A stretch of 64,000 bases of DNA. Origin: Dicyema japonicum. Lineage: Eukaryota > Animalia > Dicyemida. How positions within the stretch are numbered: position 1 is the stretch's first letter; every line of letters begins with the position of its first letter. The notes under the pieces are model-generated. The model did no database searches. It had not been told where the DNA came from and saw nothing but the letters and a program-made list of their open reading frames with translations. The translations under genes were made by a program, and so were the position numbers. The stretch is taken from contig RDEW01000012.1 of assembly GCA_011109175.1 (NCBI GenBank), positions 532,228 through 596,227 on the forward strand, read 5' to 3'. Positions 3,790-55,559 of the stretch are shown here, in pieces.

Positions 3790-4661
3790 TTATGTTTTTT
3801 GCAATAAAATAATTTTTAATAGTGTTGAAAATATTTTCCTCAGTACAATTACTCTCCAACGATTCGCACATTAACATGTCTTCTTAATAATATCGTCAAA
3901 AGGGTATCGAACGAAAACCAATAAAACTGCCAATCCTTCAACATCAGTAGACTCGTCAATTTGAATGACAAAACCATTAGAATTATTCAAACGAATTAGT
4001 AACTGCGTTTCACTATTTTCCCAAAGTTCCTGAATTCGCATTGAAATTATTTGACAAAGAAACAAGATCCAGTTTCTCAGACATTTGTTCGCCATACACT
4101 CGATGATTTTTTTGAACATGACTTTATAAGATTTTCGGCAATTGTATGTGCCTCACCACAACGTGCTGCAAGATAACTCACCTGTTTGATTAAAATAATT
4201 ATATACTTCATAGGATGCTCTGGTCGATTTTAAGTGTCGTCTTTCGCAAAATTGGACATTTCCAACTTGCACCTTGTAGATTTTAATTTGATTTGAAAAA
4301 GGAAATATCTTATCCTTTAAGTGAGGATGCTTCATCAATAAATGTCTTGATAGTTTGGCAGGAATTCTGCCGTATGTGGTAAAGTAGATCCATTCAAACC
4401 CATATGAGAGGTAACTTTCATCATATTTTTTTCTATAATTATAATTATAAAAAAACCTTTTTTGAATATTTTTTGGAATCTCTTATGCAATTATTGTTTC
4501 TCATTAAAAATCTAAAAATTGACTAACTAACCCAAAAGAGAAACAAGATTTAAGCGTGGATGTTTAATATATTTTAATAATTAAAAACTATTATTAATAA
4601 ATATAATTAATTTCGCGGAACACTAAAACTGGCTCCACGGATCCCAGGTTGGGAACCACTG
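3790..4661 (-). mobile_element. Truncated hAT (Charlie/Buster-type) DNA transposon
   Basis: QIDESTDVEGLAVLLVFVRY and KHPHLKDK motifs; terminus reads CAGTGGTTCCCAACCTGG on the minus strand from 4661, a Charlie-type TIR. Confidence 0.85.
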
Positions 4662-4984
4662 ATCTATGGAATACAGGGTTGCTCCGTGAACTAGCCTCCT
4701 TTAAGAGATTCTGTTGTAATTTGATTAATAAATTTTCAATGGGGTGTTTTTAAATTTACCAGTTGTATTGACGTTAAATGTCATGTGACTCGCCAACGAC
4801 GTGGTGGCATTTGGAAGAACAGAACCACACTTTCTCCTATCTTCACGGGTGGAGCAATAAGGAAGGCCTGCGCCGTTGCAGAGACGTTAAGCCAAACGGT
4901 CATTATTAGATTATTTTAATTGAATTAGTTTAATTTAATATTTTAAATTTGGAAAATTAATATTTAAATAATTCAAATTTGTTG

Positions 4985-5734
4985 ATGTTCAAGTTCGGTT
5001 TCAGATTATTTTCAAGATTTCTCTGTAGTCTTCCAGAAAAAAGTAATTGTTTTAAAAATATTAGATGTGTCGAATAAGGTTTCCGATCTTCTCAACTATG
5101 GAAACTACGTCAAGAACTGTCTTCCAAAATACGTACAACTCGTACAGATCGCAGCTCAAAATGAACTCGAAATCTGCGTCCATCCCCTCGGAGTTATTCC
5201 AATCCTTCATTTCCTCAGAGACAACCATAACTCACAGTTTATGAGCCTCTCCGATCTTTGTGCCTGTGATGTCCCCACTCGTCAGTATCGCTTTGAAGTA
5301 TCCATTTCGATCATTTCAGATCGTTTACAACCTTCTGTCCCTTCGCTACAACCAGAGAGTTCGTGTGAGGACATACACTGATGAATTGACCCCCATTGAC
5401 TCTGTCTGTCGGATTTACCCGGCCGCAAACTGGTACGAGCGGGAGATCTGGGATATGTACGGAGTTTTTTTCAACAACCACCCTGATTTGCGGAGGATCC
5501 TTACAGACTATGGATTCGAGGGGTACCCACTAAGGAAGGACTTTCCATTGTCAGGGTACACAGAGGTAGTGGATTGGGTGAGTTTAGGTGAGGTATGATG
5601 ATGAACTGAAACGGATTGTGTATGATCCTGTTGAATTTGAACAGGAATTCAGAAAGTTTGAGTTGAAGAGTCCTGTTGAGGGATTGTATGAGTATAATGA
5701 GGCTGTTGGGAGGATTGAGAAGGGTGAGGACTAA
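4985..5734 (+). CDS. NDUFS3: NADH dehydrogenase (ubiquinone) Fe-S protein 3
   Basis: ATG 4985; three 22-nt GT-AG introns (5043-5064, 5298-5319, 5566-5587). Spliced product contains [43 protein letters not shown] and [11 protein letters not shown]; TAA at 5732-5734. Confidence 0.97.
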
Positions 5735-6239
5735 TAATCATATTAACTACTAGTTTGTTTTTAATAAACTTATTTAAATCTAATTTTTGTAGGTTTTTCT
5801 CCTTCATCTGGGTTTAGGATGCCTGCATTCCTTCTGGCCGCCAAGCTTCTGTGCACTCTGTTTCATTGGTCGATGGTTCGGTAGGGAGATTAAGGATCAT
5901 CTTGTCAAATGGTTGGTTGAGTATAGAGAGGAGAGGAATGTGAGGCGTGCTGGGGAACAAATGCCAATATCGCCGAAGCGGACGTGTAGGGTTGCCTGGT
6001 TTCTGCCTTGATCGTCGAACTTTCGTTGGCGAGACGTTCGGTGGTAGAACGGGAATGTGTCTCAGTAAACAAGATGCACCACCAAGTACGTGGTTCATTT
6101 TTGTAGAATGTGGTAGTCACGTGGTTAGTTGGAAAGTAGATGTAGTTCTACGTTAATCAAGTGGAAGGTCGGGCAAGTATATTTTAATCATAAAGTTTTA
6201 TTTTGAAGTAGACAGATTAATCACGAGTATTTGAACTTA

Positions 6240-7450
6240 GGGATGACCCAGACATCGATTGTTTATTCCTTAGAGTCAAGGAAACCGGTTACGAATAGAA
6301 ACGGACGTTCCCGGAGATCGGTCAGATGGATCTGGTACGGTGAAGAAATTGAAGGTGGACCCGGACAAGAAGTGGTTCTAAACTCATCTTTTATTAGAAA
6401 GCTAATATTTAGAGGGACGGAGGACCAGTTTCTCTAGAAAACGTGAAAACGCACAGACGATTGAGAAGGATTTATTCCATTTATCCGCGACATACAACCC
6501 TTCCTTTACCACTTGTTAGATAGGTTACTTTTTGAGCTCCTTTATCGATTTCCATACGTTTTGCGTGGTTTTCTCAGAACTGCTTCCCAGTGTTTTTGGA
6601 TCATCCTGCAATTTTCCCCATGGCTTTTTAGTTGTGAAATCTTTTCACTCAGTAATTGTCTAAGTAGTAATTGTTTCTTTTGTATGGAAACTCGTGTTTT
6701 GTGTTAAAGGATTAATCTTTTGTAGCTCGGAGTAATCCTTCATCGGAAATAGGTAAATCTCAACAAAGGATGTGAAGGTGAGCCAGACAACATGCGAAAG
6801 TTTTGATTGATTCTTCGTTTATGAATTAATTTCCGTTTTTTCAATTCCCCACAACTTTGATTTCAGAAGGACTAGTCTTCTGTTAAATACGTCAAGTTAC
6901 CCCAGCCTCTCTATAGGAGAGAGCGATATTAAGTATTAGGCCGCAAATACTGATTCCTCCCATAAATCGGTCACTTTCGGTGTGGTAGATGGACATTGTT
7001 AAGTCCTGTACATTCGAAAAGGTGATTTGGTGCAAACGCAGAGAGGTTGCAAAGAGAACAAAGACATCATATTCTAGTTTATAGATGAGCCGTGATACTC
7101 GAATATTCCTCACTAGAGAATATTCTGATTGGCAGATTATAGAAAAGGGTCGACGTGGTATTTTGGCATAATCAAGTCTTCGGAGGATCTTGTGCTAACA
7201 CGACCACGGTCATGGAGAGAATACATGATGGAGGATAGCATTCAAGTTGTCAAAATGATTTTTGTTTTGTCTATTATTATAAGCAACAACAAATCATATA
7301 TCCCATGATCCTCTATAATAGTCTCTTTCCAGACTCCGCAGACTAATCTTCACCTTCTCTTGTGTTCTGTTCACTGGTCTCAAGTTACCATTCAGGACTT
7401 AGATAAGAACTTTCTCAAAACTTTTCCCCAAATTTTTCTAAGAATTCTTC
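6240..7450 (-). mobile_element. Possible decayed retroviral-type integrase (Gypsy/Ginger-like)
   Basis: Fragmentary HHCC-like YSLHDRGRVST...KYH and a CQ remnant; heavily interrupted. Confidence 0.3.
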
Positions 7451-7760: not shown

Positions 7761-9090
7761 TCATTCGTGGCTCTCTTCAATGATTTCCTCCTCTATGATT
7801 GATGTCTCCGTTGATTCTGATGAGACTCGGTTAGATTCCATCCAAATGATGCAGTCCAGGTAAGACGGGGGAAGTTCCTGAATGTCCCAGATGTTGTATT
7901 TCAAGTTTTTTTCGTAAATTTCCTCGCCGATATCCCTCAGTTGGGGGACTATGTCCATGATCTTCTCGAACTTTTCCTCCGTTTTTCTGAAAATCTCATA
8001 TTTCCTGAATAGATGGCAGACCTGTTCAAATTCTATGGGGATCCTCTGCAGCACGTGGCAGTACTGGTCGTCTAAAACTGATAACCTTAGTTTACTTCTC
8101 TGATAAATCAGAATCATTATCATAAGAGCTCTTTCCACGTTGTTTAAGCTTAAATCTCTGAAGATTGAAGCCAGGCTGAATAATCTGTGAATAATGTTCG
8201 CATCCTCCGGGTCGGTCATGCAGTTTATTAAAACTCCGAGACCGTCGGGGAAGATGATGACTCCTTCCTGATGGTTACAGTTCTGAAAGACGCATAAAAT
8301 GATGGACTCCAAAACAGAATTTTTGATTACTTCAATTTGGTCGGAGAAATTCAGCTAAAACTGAGGCCAATTTTTACATTAAAGAAAATTTTAATTTGGC
8401 GCCAAAATTGTACAAAATATTTGCTTATGTAAATCAGGGACTTTGAGATTTCGCTCCATTTTTTGATGTCCTCTCTAGCCCGAACCACCATTGGGAGAAA
8501 ATTGATCGGAATCTTTGTCTCCTCATTGCACAAAATCCTTTTGACCTCATTATTCTCAAATATGGGGGCAATAAAGTTATTGTATCCGTGACTTATGGAC
8601 TTTAAGATGTTTATCTCCCCTTCGTAAAATCTGACTTGGTCGGTTTTGTGGTCTCCGTTTTGCATTTGGTTCCTTCTTTGTCGGTTCTCCTCGATAAGCT
8701 TTCGTTTTTCCGTTCTCTGGTATTCCGTGAGAACGCCTAAAATAACCGAATCGCTCACATTTGCTATTCATCCCCACTTGGACACATCTTTTGAATCTGC
8801 AAGCCTGGCATTTGTTCCTACTTTCCTTGTTTATCACACATTTGAAGTCATTCTTGCAAACATAGGTGGAATTCCGTTGAATAGTCCGACGGAAGAAGCC
8901 CTAACCCTGAGAAAAGGTCAGTACCTTACAGCCCTCACAAGTCATGATCTTATAGTGCAGCCCAGTTGCAAAGTCACCACAGACTTCGCATTGTGCGGAT
9001 GGCTTCATATAGCTTGGGATGTAATTGTTGCCTATAATAATGGTTACAAATACTTATAAAGACCGACCGCTTAGTCCTGGCCAGTGCCAT
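7761..9090 (-). CDS. THR: Thyroid hormone receptor-like nuclear receptor (NR1A), DBD plus divergent LBD
   Basis: ATG 9090; introns 9032-9053 (22), 8901-8924 (24), 8737-8758 (22), 8355-8377 (23) and probably 8072-8095 (24). Spliced [33 protein letters not shown]...[14 protein letters not shown]; TR-typical hinge [12 protein letters not shown]; LBD signature [24 protein letters not shown]; AF-2-like LPPSYLDC. Confidence 0.9.
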
Positions 9091-9218
9091 TATCACAAAA
9101 AACAACAAAAACAGCTATTTATCTTAAATTGTTGGTGTCAGACCAACGCTCATATTATTGAAAATCAATTGTTTTTGTCTGTACAATTCAATGTAACAGA
9201 TTTAAGTGCAAATGCAAG

Positions 9219-22887: not shown

Positions 22888-25495
22888 TCATCCGCTCTTA
22901 GCAATCTCCTCCTCATTCTTCCTAATCGCCTCCTCAATAGAATGTGTAGAGGGGACATTCGCCACACAGGTTGAATTATAAAACGCCTGAACCGATCTCT
23001 TCACTCTCAACAACTCCCTAATAGTGTCCTCATTCCCATGCTGCAACTCAAACTGAGACCACAGATTCCAGAACACCTCGTCGCACTTAAATAAACACAA
23101 TCCATACCGCTGGGTCACAAAACTGAGAACAGTGACTCAATATCACCCTCGCTCTGTCTATCTCGCCCAATTTCTGCTCCAGTCTAGCAAAGGCCAGACA
23201 CATCTCCCTGTACGTAACCAATCCTCTACCTGGCGTCCTTATCCGGCAATTCCTGAATCGCCTTCTCGTAAATCGGCCGTACACTAGTCACCCCATACCA
23301 CTCAGAGGCTCTTTCAATGTAATGCTTAAACATCTGGATCTTATTCTCCGTTGGAACAGATTCCACCCCACGTGCGTAAACCGCCATAGCATGCCGGGAC
23401 ATACCGTACTTCTCCTCCATTTCCCCGTAGAGAGTATAAAAATCTACATATCACCCACACCGTACGATGACAGTACTTTGGAGGACAGTCTTCTAGACAT
23501 TGCTCGAACAGGTCACGTGATCTCTCCAATTTGTCTTTCCCCTACAGTAACCCCAATTGCTACAAATCTCTTCACAAATTTTGTCAGGTAAGAATTCCAC
23601 AAGTCCACCACAACAGGCCAACGAAACAGAGCTATCCCCGCTCGTACACCTGGAAGGACTGTTCAAAGTAGTTCGCCTCTTCCAGAAACAAAGCGTAGTT
23701 GGCTATGATCTGAGGGTTGGCGATTCTCAAATCGATGACACTGTCGTAGACGGCCTTACAACTCTACAATGAGACTAAGAGGACCTCGAACGTGCCGAAA
23801 CTTTCCTCCAGGTCTGCGTAGAGGCTCCACAGTTTGAGTGACTTGTGAACCCGTGACTGCACTGACTGGGATCGGTCAAAATACGACACGTGGGCTTTGT
23901 TCTTATGGGGAGTTGTCGCTCGTTGTAGTACAAATCGTGCTTGGTCGATATTTCTGGGTTAATGACATTTGTACTGGTTTCTAATCTCCATTTCGACCCA
24001 TTCAGTCCACACACACGCCAAATCATCTGGGGATTGGAACTCTACCTCCACAGCCCGGTCAAAAAGCATTCTGGCATCCTCCATTTGACCCGCCTTCTCG
24101 TAGTGCTGGGCAAAAGCCACCCAAAGACAGTGAGGTTTGCCCACAGCCAATTCCGTACTGACCCTGCTTAGAGCCTCGTTGTACACAGACACCACATCCA
24201 GTCCACTCTCAGCAGCCAGAAGAGCACGTTGCTGCCAGTTCTCAACGTTGTGGGGGTTCTGGCGAATTTTCACACTACAGTAAATTCAATAGCCACCTAT
24301 TCAACAAAATTGCCCGCCTTTCTATCAAGTACTCATATCTGGCTGTACAGAACTCCACGTGGAGAACATCTGAATTATAAATACTCTCACCTCCAAGGTT
24401 GTCCTCGAGTCCGTCGATGGCTGCCGATGCCATTGACTCCTCAAAGTGGGCGTACCCTTCGAAGATCTGAGTAAAGTCACATACCGTCTTCACACTCACC
24501 ATGGCTTCCTCATAAATGTCTCGCCTAAGTAAATGGACTCACTAACCTTGTCGAATCGTCCATTTCTGACATAATACTCAACGAGAGAGCTCCACAGCAG
24601 TCCTGACTGGTCATGGTACTGGTCTATCCCTTGTCTGATGATTGCTTCTACGTTCACGGATGTCACTTCTGTGTGCTTCACCATGAGGTCACATAGGTCA
24701 CACCACAACTGAAAATAACGAAAAAGCCAGACAAACCTGAAATTTGGTCTTCCCCTTTTTGGAGACATATTTATGGTCATTCAGGACATCTACCAACAAT
24801 TTTGCAGCCTCATCATAGTACCCCAACTCTTTGAAGTACTCAACCACGTCCTCCGCCGCCTCCCATTTGATCTGGGACTCATAACAAAGAAAACTTGAAG
24901 ATAGCGTTTCAGGACTCTTAGAGAAGTCAAAGGGACCCCACATTCCTTAATAAACGGGACATAGAGGTTCCAGATCCGTTTATGTTGAGTAACTGGGAGG
25001 GCAACTAGCGCTCGGTCGAAGGTCCGACGCGTCTTCGTGATGAAGCCTTCATGAATAAGGAGGCCAAGGTAGTTCAGCCATATTCTGGGCATCTGGGTTT
25101 AACTAGAAGGAAGACCTTCCCCATAAAGACTAAGGCCCGTTCATACACGTGGTTTAGCTCAATAAACTCGGGATGGGTCACACAGAGCAGTTTCGTACGA
25201 TCAGTACGAAATTTCAGGTACAGACTCCACAATTTGTAACTGAAATATGAGCAGAGGTTACCTGCCTGGAAGTTCTTTGAGAGCACGTTCATAGAGAACG
25301 TAGATGATGTGTGGATCTGACCCTTCTTTGTGCTCAATGTAGCGCAACCACGTTTTTACAGAAAATGGGTTTCTTATGAGTTCTTCTTCGTATGAAATGT
25401 CAGAATCATCCTGTATTTGTTAGCAATTCATATACGAATAGCAAACCCAACTTCATGAGGGCCTCTTCTTTCATAAAGATCAATTCAGACTCCAT
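22888..25495 (-). CDS. XAB2: Pre-mRNA splicing factor SYF1 (HAT repeats)
   Basis: SYEEELIRNPFSVKTWLRYIE, MPRIWLNYL, ITKTRRTFDRAL, LNSVKIRQNPHNV, LWSLYADLEES, IDRARVILSHCSQ; about 14 introns of 21-28 nt. Two apparent frame lesions (23636-23639 and about 24519-24524). Confidence 0.95.
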
Positions 25496-25589
25496 TTTTG
25501 TGCACCACCTGAAAGAGAATACTTAAATTTATTTGTATTATAAATTTAATTTTATTAATAAAATAAAATTAATGTAAGTTAATTTGATG

Positions 25590-38879: not shown

Positions 38880-41120
38880 AAATGCATATTAAAAGTATGA
38901 TCAGGACTAGCCAAGAGTACAGTGATATTGTTTCTTCTTTAGCATGTTCGACATTTCGTCCCTAGATGCGACAACTATGTCATCGGCATAGGAATTATTA
39001 TTCATAGGTACGGGGAATCATCAAAAACAAATTAAAGAGGATTGGTGATAAAGGAGATCCCTAGGGTACACCATTGGGTAATAATCTCGATCTGGAACTC
39101 ATGTTTCCGAGGGACACTTTCCCTCGGCGTCCACTTAAGAAATTTGCTAACCATAACTTTAGTGGTGCATCAATTTTTGTCAAAAATATTTTTTGTATGA
39201 GGATCTTCCTTGGGACAGAGTCGAATGCTTTTTGAATGTCGATCGTACATATGACCGATTTTTCCTGTTTTGGCTTGTTCTTGTGTCCTTCAGTTATGAA
39301 CTTCATTAATGTCGTTAGGAAGGAGGTTGTTGATAATCCTTCCTTGAAGCCATGTTGGAATGTAGGTTGTGGGAGAGAAGGGCGAATAACTTTTAGGACC
39401 AGTTTCTCCAGGATCCTCGACAAAACACATATAAGGGAAACTGGTCTGTAAGAGCCGGGATCGTTCTTCGGTCTTCCCGGTTTCAATATTGGACGAATTT
39501 TTGATAGTTTCCATAAAGTCGGTATGGTATTTATGTTTAGCGATGTGTTGTAGATGATTGTCAATGCATTTATTGATGCTGGGTCCAAGTGTTTCAGCAG
39601 AATAAGAGGAATTCCGTCTGGGCCACATGAGTTTGTTTTTTTCTGATTTGATATTGCTTTGGATACATCTTTAGGGAGAAAATAAATCAGCGGGGCAAAT
39701 TTGGATGGCTTTCTCTTTATTTTCGGTTGTGTGTTAATTTTTTATAAAGAATGTGACTGATTCGGATACAATGTTTCATAAATTTATTCAGATTGAGCTG
39801 GCATTGTTTTTTGTTATCTTCGTATTCTGAGTTTTTCAGACGCCTCAACATTTTCCACATGTTGGAAATTGAGGTCTGATTATTCATAGCAAAAGAGACT
39901 CGCATGAATTTCTTCCTTCGGGTGTTGTTCGTGCTTATCGTGATAAGAATGTTTAGTGACCTGATTTGATTAATGACCTCTCGTGAACGATGTATCATTC
40001 TCTTAAGGTTGTTTTTTCCATAATTATTTTCTTGTTTTTGAGTCGTATTTCAATTTTTTTTTTATATATGCTTTTCTGATAAAAATTTTTCTCCTGTGAA
40101 TGATTGTTTTGTTGAAATAGTATACAGCTTTGTCTATGGAGGAGAAATTTTCAGGTTGGAAATGTTGCAGTTTTGAATCAACGAAATTTGTAAAGCCAGT
40201 CCAATTTGCATTTTTGTAATCATAGAAATGAATAGGCTTCGGTACAAAGCGTGGCTCGCAGTTCAGCTTCATTAACATTGAATGGTGGTCGCTTCGGAGG
40301 TCATAACGGACCGTCCAATTAATGATCGGGGAAAGACGAGGTGAGCAGACGGATAAGTCCGGAGATGTCACCATGTCCTTCGTGTTGTATGGTGTCCTAG
40401 TGTTCTTTTTCGGGTTGTTGATGATTATTAAGTTTTGCATTTATGATAATAGCAGGTTTCCTCTGTTATCAGTGGATTGGTAGCGGAACCAAGAAGGGTG
40501 CTTCGCATTAGGTCTCCACATAAAAGCAAGTTCTCCAGTTTGTCCAAGGTAGATAAGTCAAAGAAGAAATTTTTCTTGCAGGAGCCAGGAGGAGGAACAT
40601 AAACATTCGCAATTTCAATTTTTCCAATGGAAGTTATAACAGAGATTCCAATTATCTCCGTGTTCGAGTCTTCCATTAAGCTCTTGTAAAGAGGGTTCTC
40701 GAGGTATTTTATTACTTTTCTTACAAGAGTCAGTAGACCCCCTTCTTGGCCAGATGGGCGGTCGAATCTTACTGTGTTGTATCCGTTAAAGAGAGGAATA
40801 GGAATGCTATTTGAAAACTTCGTTTCCTGGAGAAGGCAGATGTCCACTCTGTTTCTCTCCTAGAATAAGGAAAATTTGGCAATCTTTCCTCTGATCCCGT
40901 TTATGTTTAAGCTTTGGATTGTTAACTTCTTTGGGCCTGGATTTTGTTTCACGTCTCCTGAGGTCAACAGTCTCAATCGATAGAATGTTCCAACAGTGAG
41001 AGAATGCCGTCCAGTTGGAAGTCCTCATGTTGGTAGAGAGCAAATAGTTCTTTTTAGATATAGTTTAGGACTATATCCGACGCCACCAGAAACGGTGAAC
41101 CACATGACACACGCTAAATA
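38880..41120 (-). mobile_element. Decayed LINE ORF2 (APE + RT), 3'-truncated
   Basis: DICLLQETK, NVYVPP, SDHH, YRPVSLICVLSRILEKL, DIQKAFDSV, GVP, SYADDIVV. Confidence 0.92.
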
Positions 41121-47380: not shown

Positions 47381-50300
47381 ATGGATGTTGACTATTTTGC
47401 CTCTGGTCGTGTTTATTATTATTACATTTAAGGAGTCGATTTTTCTGATAATAAGGAGGATTACGATGAAATAACATCAGAAATATGGCAAGAAGCTTGC
47501 TGGATTGTTATCAGCGCCTATTTTGAGGAGAAAGGACTCGTTCGCCAGCAGCTCGACTCCTTCGACGAGTTTATCCAAATGTCTGTCCAACGAATCGTTG
47601 AGGAAACCCCACCAATTGAATTAAAAGCAGAATCAAAGCATAATCCCGATCAGGATGAGACCCAAGTACTTATAATGGCTAACTAAGATAAAATACGTGA
47701 TAAGATTCGGCCAAATTTACCTTTCCCGGCCAACCCATTGGGAAAAGGAGGGCAACGCAGTCCAAATGTTGCCAAACGAGGCCCGACTTCGTAATCTGAC
47801 ATATTCTGCCCCCATTTACGTAGACATCACCAAAACGTGCTTTCAGGACGACGTGGAGATCAGTAGTAATACCCACACCAAAGTCTTCATCGGGAGGGTC
47901 CCCATAATGCTCCGAAGTGCTTATTGTCTGCTCAACAACCTTTCAGCACGTGACTTGATTGAGCTGAAGGAGTGTCCCCTGGACCCTGGGGGCTACTTTA
48001 TCGTGAATGGTTCTGAGAAGGTGATCATTGCCCAGGAAAAGATGGCCTCCAATAACGGTGAGGGTTCTTTTTTACCAAAGTTTACGTTTTCCAGCAGAAG
48101 GATTCTAAGTACAGCTACAAGGCTGAGGTACGGTGTGCCATGGAGAACTCGAGTCGCCCTACGTCGACTCTGTGGGTTAATATGCTGGCACGTGGAGGAC
48201 AGGGGACCAAGAAGAGTGTTATAGGACAGAGGATAGTGGCCACGTTACCATATATTAAACAGGAGATCCCAATCATGGTGGTCTTCCGTGCTCTGGGATT
48301 TGTTTCAGATCGTGACATCCTCGAACACATCATCTATGACTTTGACGATCCCGAAATGATGGAGATGGTAATTCCATGATTTATCGCAGCTCAAACCTTC
48401 CCTGGACGAAGCATTCGTCATACAACATCAAAGTGTTGCTCTTAACTTTATTGGAACACGTGGGGCCCACCCAGGGGTCACTAAGGAGAAGAGGATCAAA
48501 TACGCACGTGAGATATTACAGAAAGAAGTGCTTCCACACGCGGGGATCTCTGATTTTTGTGAGACAAAGAAGGCTTACTTTTTGGGGTTTTTTGATTCCA
48601 TGATTTTAGATATATCGTCCATCGACTGTTGATGTGTGCTCTTGGGAGAAGACTGTGTGATGACAGGGACCACATGGCTTTCAAGAGACTGGACATGGCC
48701 GGTCCCCTTTTGGCTTTTCTGTTCCGTGGACTATTCCGTAATCTTGTCAAAGAGGTGAGAATGTACGCCCAGAAGATCATTGATGGTGGAAAGGACTTCA
48801 ACGTGGAGCTGTCTGTCAGAACACGTGTCATCACAGACGGACTACGATATTCTCTGGCCACAGGCAATTGGGGGGACCAGAAGAAAGCCCATATGTCCAG
48901 AGCGGGGGTATCGCAGGTCATTTAGCATGTATAATATCCTTAGGTTTTGAACAGACTTACTTACGTCTCGACCCTCTCACATTTGCGACGACTGAATTCA
49001 CCTATTGGGAGGGATGGCAAACTGGCACGGCCACGACAACTCCATAACACGCAGTGGGGGTATCTCTGTCCCGCAGAGACTCCAGAAGGGACCGCCGTTG
49101 GTTTGGTGAAGAACCTGGCTCTTATGGCTTACATTTCTGTGGGATCCCAACCGTATCCCATACTAGAGTTCCTGGAGGAGTGGGGGATGGAGAACTTGGA
49201 GGAAGTGTCCTCACCGACTATTGTGGGGAGGTTGATAGTGTTTTGTATGCAGTACTACTAAAATATTTGTAAATGGATGTTGGGTGGGTATTCACCGTGA
49301 TCCTGAACAGTTGATGGTGATTTTGCGGAAACTTAGGAGACAGACTGGGGACGTGGTTGTCTCTGAGGTAGGATTTTCTTAATCCCAGGTTTCTATACTA
49401 CGGGACATCGAGGACCGGGAGATCAAGATTTTTTGTGACGCTGGGAGAGCCTGCCGTCCACTCCTGATTGTAGAGAATCAAAAGCTGCTGTTGAAAATGC
49501 GTCACGTGGAAGGACTGAAGCGTCAGTATGATCCCATCGGGTAGTTATTTAATGTGACTTAGATGGCGGGATTTGGTTTCCGAGGGAGTGGTGGAGTACA
49601 TAGACTCGATTGAGGAACAGATGACCATGATAGCCATGCATCCTGACGATCTATCTGAAGTAAGTTCTTACTGTTCGACCTATACTCATTGTGAGATTCA
49701 CCCTTCTATGATCTTGGGTGTCTGTGCTTCCTTGATTCCTTTCCCTGATCACAATCAGTCCCCACGGAACACCTATCAAGCTGCTATGGGAAAACAGGCC
49801 ATGGGAGTTTATGTCACCAACTTTCACGTGCGTATGGACTCGTTGTCCTTCTGTCTTTACTATCCACAGAAACCGCTCACTACGACGAGAGCCATGGAAT
49901 TCCTTAAATTCCGTGAACTTCCATCTGGTAAGCTCTTGATTTATGTTAGGGATCAACACCATCGTGGCTATAGCCGCTTATACGGGATATAATCAAGAAG
50001 ACTCCATTATTATGAACCAGTCAGCCGTGGATAGGGGGCTATTCAGGTTTTTCCATACTTTTTATTCCAGAGCTGTGTTTTATCGTTGCTACAGAGATCA
50101 AGAAACTAAGAAACCACCGTATGAGGAAGACTTTTTCGAGAAGCCTAACAGAAAGGAAGTGGTTGGGATGAGACATGCCTTGTATGATAAACTTGACGAG
50201 GATGGAGTCATTGCTCCTGGAACACGTGTCTCTGGTGATGACGTCATCATTGGGAAGACATGTATGCTCAATGAGAGTGAGGACGAGAAGGAAGGGGAAG

Positions 50301-51285
50301 TAAAGAAGTATACAAAGCGAGATGTGTCTACGTTTTTACGGAAAACGGAGAACGGGATTGTTGACCAGGTAATACCAGTCTCTTAGTGGAGGTGATGATG
50401 ACTGTGAGTCAGGAAGGCTACAAGTTCTGTAAAGTGAGGGTGAGGACCTGCAAGATTCCCCAGATTGGTGACAAGTTTGCTTCTCGTCACGGTCAGAAAG
50501 GGACTTGCGGAATTCTGTACCGACAGGAGGTTTTTGTGATTCCCAATTAAAGGATCTTCCGTTTACCGGGGAAGGAATAACTCCGGACCTGATAATAAAT
50601 CCCCACGCTATTCCCAGTCGAATGACCATTGGGCACCTGATTGAGTGTCTCTTGGGGAAGTTATCTGCATGTAAGGGTGAGATTGGGGATGCCACCCCTT
50701 TCAACGACACAATCAACGTGCAGAAGATATCAAACATGCTAAAGGACTATGGGTACCATTTGCGAGGGAATGAGGTATTGGTCATGTGACGGGTAGGTTA
50801 TGTACTGTGGGTTCACTGGAAGGAAGATTAACACTCAGATTTTCATAGGTCCTACCTATTATCAGAGGTTGAAACATATGGTGGACGATAAAATTCATGC
50901 CAGAGCACGTGGGCCTGTTCAAATATTGACTAGACAACCATTGGAGGGGCGATCACGGTGATTGGTGATGGTTATTAAAGTGACGGTGGTCTTCGGTTTG
51001 GGGAGATGGAGAGGGACTGTCAGATCTCCCACGGAGCCTCCCAGTTTTTGCGGGAACGTCTGTTTGAAGTTTCTGATCCATATTATGTGGTTGTGTGTAA
51101 CCACTGTGGGTTCATCGCCATATTCTCAAAGTCAAAGAAGTCTTTAGAGTGCAAGGCCTGCAAGAATAAGACACAGGTGATGTGATTTGCTATGTTAGAT
51201 GTCCCTTGTTGGGATTCCATATGCCTGTAAGCTGTTGTTTCAGGAGTTGATGTCGATGTCTATTGCCCCCAGGATGTTTGTATAA
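47381..51285 (+). CDS. POLR2B: RNA polymerase II second-largest subunit
   Basis: Intact after removing 16 GT-AG introns of 27,22,23,22,23,27,22,21,22,22,24,23,23,22,23,22 nt; motifs [44 protein letters not shown]; TAA at 51283-51285. Confidence 0.99.
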
Positions 51286-53575: not shown

Positions 53576-55559
53576 ATGAGCTATAAAGATCTTGTTGACA
53601 GTAAAAAGGCTAAACTTGAAGCTTTAAAGTCATCACGACTGCAAAGAGAAGAAGCTAAGAGGAAGACCCATGAGGTAATTCTTTATTAATATCAGGCCTC
53701 TCAGTCATTATCAACACTTTCAGATATTTCAGATCTTAAAGATGAGGCTACCAAACTCCTCACCGGTCTTGGAGTTCCAATGACTAACGTTTCAAGAAAT
53801 ATTTTCCATTCCAATTCAAGCAGTACTCTCACTATGAGAGACTCATCAGACTTTACTGATAAGACATCGTTAGATCCTTTCTTATTATAGAACACCTGTA
53901 AAGGCTACCAAGTCTGTGGAAACCGCAGATAAGGCTACAGAATGTCTACTTTTTAACCCTTTAACCGACAGATACAGCAAATCTACGCAAACTACTTATA
54001 TTGAAGGGAATGATTTGGTTGACTCTGAAACCACTAAGGTCGAACCAAAAGTTGATAAAAGTCCTGAAAATATATTACAAGAAAAATCTGTTTATAAGAC
54101 TACAGAGATGTGTTTGTCTGAGGAGGAACTAGAAAACATCCTGATGGACCATAAATTTATAAGTTTTGCATATCAGGCTTTGAATATTGTGGAGAGAGTG
54201 TTGGCTGAAGAAGTGAAGGATGTATTAGTGGACTACTCACTAGACATAACTGAAACTGATGAAAAAGACCGCCAAGATCAATTAACTTGCAGACGTATAT
54301 TCGTAGATAATAAATGTAATCGGGCATGCCTTTCTCTCGATTGGTCCCCTTCTGTATTTGTCTATCTAATTCTCAGTATCCAGAACTTTTGATTTCTGGT
54401 TATGGAGGTCGTAGTAATGATACTTCTGGGGTCGTATATGTATGGAATCTTAACTTTAGTAAGAAAACCCCAGAATATAGTTTTATATCATCTGTAAGTT
54501 AATATAGTGATTAAAGTCTTCGATATCGTCAGTTTTGGCTCCCAAATATAATCCTAATTACATATTGGCTGGCACCATCTCTGGTCAGGTGCTACTTTGG
54601 GACAAAAGAGTTTGCAAACAGACGCCTTCTCAGAGAACTCAGATTAGTCAGAAAGGTCATGCTGTAAGTTTTATTTTCATTTTTAGCACAGTGTTCACCA
54701 TTTAAGTATTTCTGGAACATCTAACGCCCACAATCTTGTGACTGCTTCTAATGATGGTAGATTTTGTACGTGGAGCTTGGATATGTTGACTCAGCCAATT
54801 GTTGTTATATATGTAATACTAGGATTCTTATGATATTTTTGCATCTTCTAATAAACTGATGCTTAGTTCTTTAGCCTTCCAACCTGGGGATATCTCTAAT
54901 TTCATAAGTGGAACAAGTGAGGGATACCTATACGGACATTTGAGAGATGATAAGTTTGTTATTATGTCATTGTAGTTTATTAAGTCTTTCTAACAAATAT
55001 GATGGACATTCTAGTCTTATTACTGCAATATCTGGGAATTATACTAAAGGACATGTTGACTTTTCTGGTTATTTTTTGACATCCTCCATGGACTGGACTG
55101 TTAAATTGTGGAGAGTTAATGTTCTTATTCTTTTAATGGTAGGAATCCAGGCCTGTTCATACATTCGAGTGGGGCATTAATTGTGTTTATGGGGTCGAGT
55201 GGTCCCCGGTTCATCCTGGACTCTTCTGCTCTGTGGATGGGGAGGGAAGATTGAACTTGTGGAATCTTCTGAGAGATGCTGAGGTAGTGAATCACATAAT
55301 TGCAGTTTCCTAGTTCTGTGGGGGAGGTGTTTGAGGATAGGCAGAACTCATTGGCGATGTGTTCGTGCAGGTGGAATGCTTTTGGGAACATATTGGCTGC
55401 CGGAGATTCTGGAGGGAGGACATATGTGTATGATGTTAGTGAGGTTAGATTTTTATTATTTTAGTTTGCCCCAAAATGGATGATTGGTGTTCTGTTAACA
55501 GGGTTTTCAATGACATGAGGACTAATTCTATGGAGGATAATCAGATTGCTTTTATTTAA
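53576..55559 (+). CDS. DYNC1I: Cytoplasmic dynein 1 intermediate chain
   Basis: N-terminal coiled coil, YSKSTQT, SEEELENIL...IVERVLAE, WD40 motifs (DWSPSYPELL, SSMDWTVKLW, WSPVHPGLFCSVDGEGRLNLWNL); introns mostly 21-23 nt. Last junction has a frame ambiguity at 55469-55472. Confidence 0.95.

Follow-up and report, generated by a model that had tools for sequence, protein, structure and literature searches.

How does the sense strand of a 750-nt housekeeping gene come to turn from C-rich to G-rich between its start and stop codons? The question is raised by a gene of the dicyemid Dicyema japonicum (assembly of 67.5 Mb in 377 scaffolds, PMC6736024) located at positions 4985-5734 of the 64-kb window, the whole stretch of DNA analyzed here. 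The first-pass annotation of the window read the change as the work of a strand-asymmetric mutational process at the scale of single genes. The flip is real, and the analysis places this gene at the far end of a weak strand bias that runs from the start to the end of genes and that yeasts share; it does not show that each gene is a replicating unit of its own.

Structure and base composition of the NDUFS3 gene

The gene encodes NDUFS3, the complex I 30-kDa subunit, on the + strand. The coding unit (4985-5734) comprises four exons (4985-5042, 5065-5297, 5320-5565 and 5588-5734) with the ATG at 4985 and the TAA at 5732-5734, and the joined frame of 227 codons plus TAA is open with a single terminal stop. 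The three introns are each 22 nt long with GT..AG ends. Intron 1 (5043-5064) is nearly all A/T with an interior of G1/C0, intron 2 (5298-5319) is C-biased and intron 3 (5566-5587) is G-biased. The exons were submitted to the searches one by one, and the joined coding sequence (CDS) served only for base counting. The gene was identified as NDUFS3 because exon 3, searched singly in Pfam, matches PF00329 (Complex1_30kDa, E 1.5e-35) and because single-exon alignments place exons 2 and 4 on residues 15-84 (E 3e-25) and 174-211 (E 3e-9) of mammalian NDUFS3. The protein sequence is largely conserved with mammals, and NDUFS3 is an ordinary nuclear gene. An AATAAA hexamer at 5763-5768 (+), 29 nt past the stop codon, is likely the poly(A) signal of the gene, judging from its sequence. 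The tail past the stop codon is A/T-rich and has no G excess.

Base counting along the sense strand reproduced the hand counts of the first-pass annotation exactly, with C35/G18 at 5101-5220 and C8/G36 at 5581-5700. The GC skew in 120-nt sliding windows runs from -0.36 to +0.64, and the G/(G+C) is 0.40 to the left of position 5400 vs. 0.69 to the right (Fisher p 2.6e-7). A three-part model gives a G/(G+C) of 0.38 for the C-biased 5' segment (4985-5350, +), 0.54 up to 5560 for the intermediate segment (5351-5560, +), which holds most of the conserved Complex1_30kDa domain, and 0.85 thereafter; the G-biased 3' segment itself (5566-5734, +), composed of intron 3 and exon 4, has a value of ~0.85. 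The best single change-point is located at 5565, the boundary of exon 3 and intron 3, where the G/(G+C) changes from 0.45 to 0.86. A step at this position fits better than a linear trend (log-likelihood of -202.2 vs. -209.4), and the profile has the shape of a late step at the last intron rather than a symmetric, central V. Third codon positions in the successive quarters of the CDS have G7/C17, G7/C23, G16/C20 and G22/C3, and the 4-fold sites have C12/G2 in the second quarter but C0/G6 in the fourth. The introns join the flip, as had been claimed for them, with G1/C5 in the interior of intron 2 vs. G8/C0 in that of intron 3. The G bias does not extend past the stop codon to the AATAAA. A and T do not flip with G and C, the T/(A+T) being 0.53 vs. 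0.51 (p 0.77).

The share of the gradient owed to the protein was estimated by a synonymous shuffle, in which codons are permuted among synonymous positions within the gene while the protein and the overall codon usage remain fixed. The slope of the all-site skew against relative position is 1.00 in NDUFS3, compared with 0.53 expected from the protein only (z 3.9). About half of the all-site gradient thus comes from the amino-acid sequence and the other half is synonymous. Leu/Pro/Gln/His-type codons abound in the N-terminal part of the protein and Asp/Glu/Gly/Val/Lys-type codons in its C-terminal part. The earlier claim that protein composition alone is insufficient agrees with the shuffle, the 4-fold sites and the flip of the introns, but it overstated the silent component. 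As to an effect of the skew on amino-acid usage along genes, the protein-only expected slope has a mean of 0.054 (p 0.19) and a correlation with the synonymous excess of rho 0.30 (p 0.09).

Recurrence of the gradient in other genes

The sample covers 264 kb, consisting of the 64-kb window and 200 kb of another scaffold (C1:200001-400000). Genes were predicted by our own dynamic programming, which joins open frames by GT..AG introns of 18-40 nt and was iteratively trained; a simple listing of all GT..AG pairs that could connect long open frames gave too much noise, and dynamic programming was used instead. The finder recovers NDUFS3 and yields 65 non-redundant predicted genes of at least 120 codons, all of them our own models. 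The longest exon of 50 predicted genes was scanned with Pfam, one exon per gene. The transposon set consists of 13 open reading frames (ORFs), 12 of which have reverse-transcriptase, endonuclease or DDE-transposase matches, and the 13th (40428-40859), which lacks a Pfam match, was added because it lies in a retroelement segment. The host-like set consists of 33 intron-bearing non-transposon genes. Host genes identified by Pfam are SYF1, an RPB2-type subunit, a DUF2046 protein, a CBP/p300-like protein and a giant CEMIP/TIG/PA14 protein. Silent sites were defined as third codon positions plus intron interiors. Two comparisons were set aside: the skews of the two halves of raw ORFs (≥100 codons) gave no information, and pooling all 65 genes diluted the signal because many of them are reverse-transcriptase or DDE transposon ORFs. 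The lengths of the predicted introns of the window and the C1 block have a sharp maximum at 22-23 nt, far short of the 38 bp published as the mean, and the intron interiors have more T than A on the sense strand all along the genes (+0.11 to +0.18).

The slope of NDUFS3 is the steepest of all 65 predicted genes. NDUFS3 is therefore a picked extreme, yet it lies well beyond sampling noise. The SYF1 gene (22888-25498, -; PF23231 and PF23220) is a second example with a synonymous z of 4.6. Its GC3 skew changes from -0.04 to +0.54, and its introns have G/C counts of 1/6 and 1/7 in the early part of the gene and of 10/2, 8/1 and 4/0 in the late part. The gene of the RNA polymerase second-largest subunit (RPB2 type; 47432-51285, +; PF00562) is a third, with a z of 3.4 and a GC3 skew changing from -0.14 to +0.32. 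A like gradient is seen in an unnamed gene of 583 codons and 10 introns (53585-55559, +), in which the z is 3.0 and the GC3 skew changes from -0.11 to +0.40.

Comparison of the two gene sets showed that the transposon ORFs behave as a null set in the synonymous shuffle (mean z -0.08, SD 0.99), whereas the intron-bearing host-like genes have a mean z of 0.47 and an SD of 1.88. Over the 33 host-like genes, the silent-site slope has a random-effects mean of 0.168 ± 0.089 (p 0.059), and the SD between genes is 0.43. The slope is individually positive (t > 1.645) in nine of these genes (binomial p 2.5e-5) and negative (t < -1.645) in three, compared with 1.65 expected each way. None of the 13 transposon ORFs has a positive silent-site gradient (mean -0.01, SD 0.10). 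The end-window shuffle of McLean & Tirosh, which uses all sites, is significant in 6 of 33 host-like genes and 2 of 13 transposon ORFs, which is no clear difference. Depending on the test used, 18-27% of the host genes have the gradient.

The introns show the same direction as the codons. Introns in the first fifth of the genes have a skew of -0.03 and those in the last fifth one of +0.22 (Spearman p 0.02 for the rise), and intron sites shift at least as much as third codon positions in the 264-kb sample. In anchored profiles of the pooled host genes, the first 300 nt have a skew of -0.05 and the last 150 nt one of +0.10, both with wide confidence intervals that touch zero. The flanks of the predicted coding sequences show no skew in these profiles, with values of -0.03 to +0.04 and approximately +0.03 downstream. 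The pooled TA slope is flat (0.03 ± 0.06). The gradient is symmetric under reverse complement and can therefore be tested on islands without gene models. Such a strand-blind test on 76 GC-rich islands gave a mean slope of +0.075 (p 0.028), with t > 2 in eight islands and t < -2 in two. The saw-tooth asymmetry, measured as the skewness of the skew increments, was not significant.

The crossover lies at 0.09-0.81 of the CDS length across the nine positive genes. From start to end of the gradient-positive genes, the C/(C+T) falls from 0.46 to 0.34 and the G/(G+A) rises from 0.44 to 0.58, and at their 4-fold sites T goes up and A goes down toward the 3' end. These genes were chosen on their G/C slope, so that independent information is limited to the direction in which A and T change at 4-fold sites.

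Several genes depart from the pattern. A CBP/p300-like gene with ZZ and TAZ zinc fingers (G000:C1:250994-253751, -) is strongly reversed, its GC3 skew changing from approximately +0.6 to -0.45 (z -3.0); the prediction may cover only a portion of a longer gene, or the gene may truly break the 5'-C/3'-G polarity. CEMIP beta-helix, IPT/TIG and PA14 domains occur in three adjacent predictions (G000:C1:265806-279145, -) that are probably one fibrocystin/PKHD1-like gene of >3,600 codons and ~70 micro-introns. This giant gene has no gradient, and its sense strand is mildly C-biased throughout. The predicted gene at 7761-9114, whose scanned exon has no Pfam match, has no gradient either. The gradient is thus tied to gene orientation, but only a minority of genes show it strongly, its average strength is low, and it is not found in every gene. 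Strand-asymmetric bias at single-gene scale, as originally proposed, does recur (SYF1, the RPB2-type gene, nine of 33 host-like genes vs. none of 13 transposon ORFs); however, the borderline pooled slope and the three reversed genes show that it is no general rule.

Comparison with known skews and weighing of causes

That there is a bias, and that it runs with the orientation of the gene, is shown by the data. Genes of unicellular fungi are described as having GC skews of opposite sign at their two ends, with three regimes along the gene (McLean & Tirosh 2011, PMC3315797). The fungal skews continue into the promoter and both UTRs, and the C bias is strongest in the promoter and 5' UTR. The fungal G bias peaks at the stop codon, 4-fold sites are affected and the AT skew is flat; the skew is significant in 33% of C. 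albicans, 14% of S. cerevisiae and 7.5% of S. pombe genes (PMC3315797). NDUFS3 shares with the fungal genes the succession of a C-biased 5' part, an intermediate part and a G-biased 3' part (0.38, 0.54 and 0.85). As in the fungi, the dicyemid G bias is strongest at the stop codon and not past it, 4-fold sites are involved (z 3.9 in NDUFS3), the average AT skew is flat, and the pattern is present in many genes though not in every one (18-27% here). However, the dicyemid skews do not reach the flanks; the NDUFS3 tail is A/T-rich and both flanks of the gene are repeats. The dicyemid also differs in being an animal, in having 22-nt introns that take part as non-coding sites inside the gene, and in its gradient-positive genes, in which T rises and A falls at silent sites toward the 3' end. 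The average dicyemid effect in the 264-kb sample is weak. On this comparison, the dicyemid gradient has most of the defining features of fungal-type opposite GC skews. A literature search found no paper on the GC skew of nuclear genes in dicyemids, and the D. japonicum genome paper is silent on skew and codon usage (PMC6736024).

With somewhat more confidence than doubt, we attribute the gradient to mutation or repair that is linked to transcription and acts unequally on the two strands depending on position, the effect having accumulated in old host genes. The part of the gradient remaining after subtraction of the protein share sits at silent sites and in 22-nt introns, indicating that this part acts on DNA or pre-mRNA and not via translation. 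We infer that transcription is the cause. The gradient would be bound to the transcription unit, with a sense strand that is C-biased near the start, neutral in mid-gene and G-biased up to the stop codon. The balance of mutation and repair bias would shift between the initiation-proximal and termination-proximal parts, and the bias would build up in old, steadily transcribed genes. Sense-strand changes of C to T and of A to G toward the 3' end would be expected from a growing exposure of the non-template strand. The authors of the fungal study left the cause of the fungal skew open between mutation, biased differently in the successive phases of transcription, and an adaptive avoidance of C (PMC3315797).

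A fluctuation in one gene combined with protein composition, which would make NDUFS3 the tail of a broad distribution of local skews with no orientation-tied process, is an unlikely account. The first rank of NDUFS3 among the 65 genes, the half of its slope that is due to the protein, the p of 0.059 for the pooled host genes, the existence of reversed genes and the non-significant saw-tooth test are all in keeping with it. However, nine positive against three negative genes is hard to reconcile with 1.65 expected each way, the transposon control is null-like (SD of z 0.99 vs. 1.88 in the host-like genes), the introns run in the same direction, and all three of the well-conserved housekeeping genes in the window are positive with a z of 3.4 or more. 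Selection instead of mutation is judged just as unlikely as such a fluctuation. Here G-rich, C-poor 3' parts would aid termination via R-loops in a compact genome, or avoidance of C would tune the flow of polymerases. In human genes, terminal (3') GC skew is tied to R-loops and to close, mostly tandem neighbors (Ginno et al. 2013, Genome Res 23:1590, PMC3787257), and adaptive C-avoidance has been proposed for the fungi (PMC3315797). The genes of the present sample are tightly packed, and most gradient-positive genes have tandem downstream neighbors. By sequence alone, the dicyemid and human genes are alike in the excess of G on the non-template strand near 3' ends, in the gene-dense DNA and in the mostly tandem neighbors, but the human genes are G-skewed at both ends with a 3' peak straddling the transcript end, whereas the dicyemid genes are C-biased at the 5' end and their G bias ends at the stop codon. 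The 3' polarity fits the terminator or R-loop selection put forward in the first-pass annotation. Against such selection stand the G bias of NDUFS3 ending ahead of the AATAAA and an A/T-rich tail, downstream flanks that average approximately +0.03, and a mean z that is equal for genes with tandem and with convergent neighbors (0.47 vs. 0.46); the C bias at the 5' end is left unexplained.

The same comparison of neighbor classes (Mann-Whitney p 0.79) counts against convergent antisense transcription, also put forward earlier, in which transcription from the 3' end would impose the opposite transcription-linked bias on the 3' half. Such transcription would give opposite skews in the two halves of a gene, and the nearest real gene 3' of NDUFS3 is indeed convergent at a distance of ~2 kb. 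However, the A/T skew does not invert, and the interpretation of the two halves as one bias on opposite strands was dropped for this reason. The DNA directly 3' of NDUFS3 is a dispersed repeat, and the SYF1, RPB2-type, 583-codon and 379-codon genes all have tandem downstream neighbors, making this cause quite improbable. Still less probable is that each gene sits on its own small replicon, with a mid-gene origin or as a gene-sized circle or amplicon, and that the leading/lagging bias switches inside the gene. The + strand does have an origin-like polarity, being C-rich and then G-rich whichever the direction of the gene, and the background given for this idea is correct in that extrachromosomal circles and selective DNA amplification have been reported in dicyemids (PMC6543705). 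A replicon of this kind would be expected to invert the G/C and T/A skews jointly and to affect all classes of sequence alike. In NDUFS3, however, G and C flip (G fraction 0.40 vs. 0.69) without A and T (T fraction 0.53 vs. 0.51), the main change comes late, at the last intron, and the gene lacks flanking direct repeats of note. The crossovers are scattered and neither central nor scaled with gene length, contrary to what a gene-centered origin or amplicon would produce, and the idea thus fails on its own predictions. Moreover, the pattern is missing from the transposon ORFs of this same DNA, the intergenic flanks are unskewed, and fungi share the pattern without such replicons (PMC3315797).

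Replication-linked switches, such as those at bacterial origins and in human N-domains, affect G/C and T/A together, extend over kilobases to megabases and are independent of gene structure. The dicyemid gradient resembles them in its sign along one strand, C-rich and then G-rich. It differs in affecting G/C only, over a few hundred bases, in some genes, and in being absent from transposons and spacers. The gradient could also be the footprint of a dicyemid-specific process distinct from the fungal-type bias, such as gene-sized DNA units of the germ line (circles or selectively amplified segments) replicated on their own or a 3'-anchored RNA-templated conversion; the evidence counts against it, and we regard it as just as far-fetched as the gene-sized replicon.

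The transcription-linked asymmetry that we favor bears on a pattern for which both a mutational and an adaptive explanation have been offered in fungi. If an animal shows the same 5'-C/3'-G skew, it is no mere fungal oddity. The very short introns of dicyemids place sites that are free of translational selection in every part of the gene, and the D. japonicum genome, together with its published annotation and transcriptomes, could help to separate mutation, transcription-level selection and translation. Intragenic skew flips are to be expected in this genome and should not be taken for origins, breakpoints or amplicon borders.

Repeats around NDUFS3 and other features of the sample

A high-copy element of ~122 bp (4776-4897) lies directly 5' of NDUFS3, outside the gradient. 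The first look gave 325 candidate copies, 40 of which were scored, with ~90% identity and in both orientations. The element ends roughly 90 bp before the start codon and resembles a MITE or SINE family. Rfam gave no match in 4300-6700, which includes the element. On the 3' side, a dispersed repeat (5785-6060) has at least 12 copies of 69-81% identity on both strands, and a second dispersed repeat segment (6265-6375) has at least four copies of 69-81% identity. A G-rich domain running ~700 nt beyond NDUFS3, to approximately 6420, was considered and dropped as the DNA there is dispersed repeat. The dispersed repeats are G-rich themselves, which accounts for the G-richness of the + strand 3' of NDUFS3 without any extension of the gene skew. 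A search for direct repeats bracketing NDUFS3 found none of note.

Three further loci of the sample were noted. On the + strand at G000:C1:392411-394975, a micro-intron gene of ~180 codons without a Pfam match is present in three tandem copies ~980 bp apart, with identical prediction scores in two of the three. A long reverse-transcriptase ORF (RVT_1, E 2.8e-29) on the - strand at G000:C1:217055-221458 has ~10 predicted micro-introns, which may result from over-splicing of degraded elements by the finder or may mean that retroelements of this genome truly have host-style introns. Within the window, the segment 62652-63881 holds an intron-free frame of 409 codons with a weak match, below the Pfam cut-off, to NCD3G (family-3 GPCR cysteine-rich), and the gene probably extends toward the window end.
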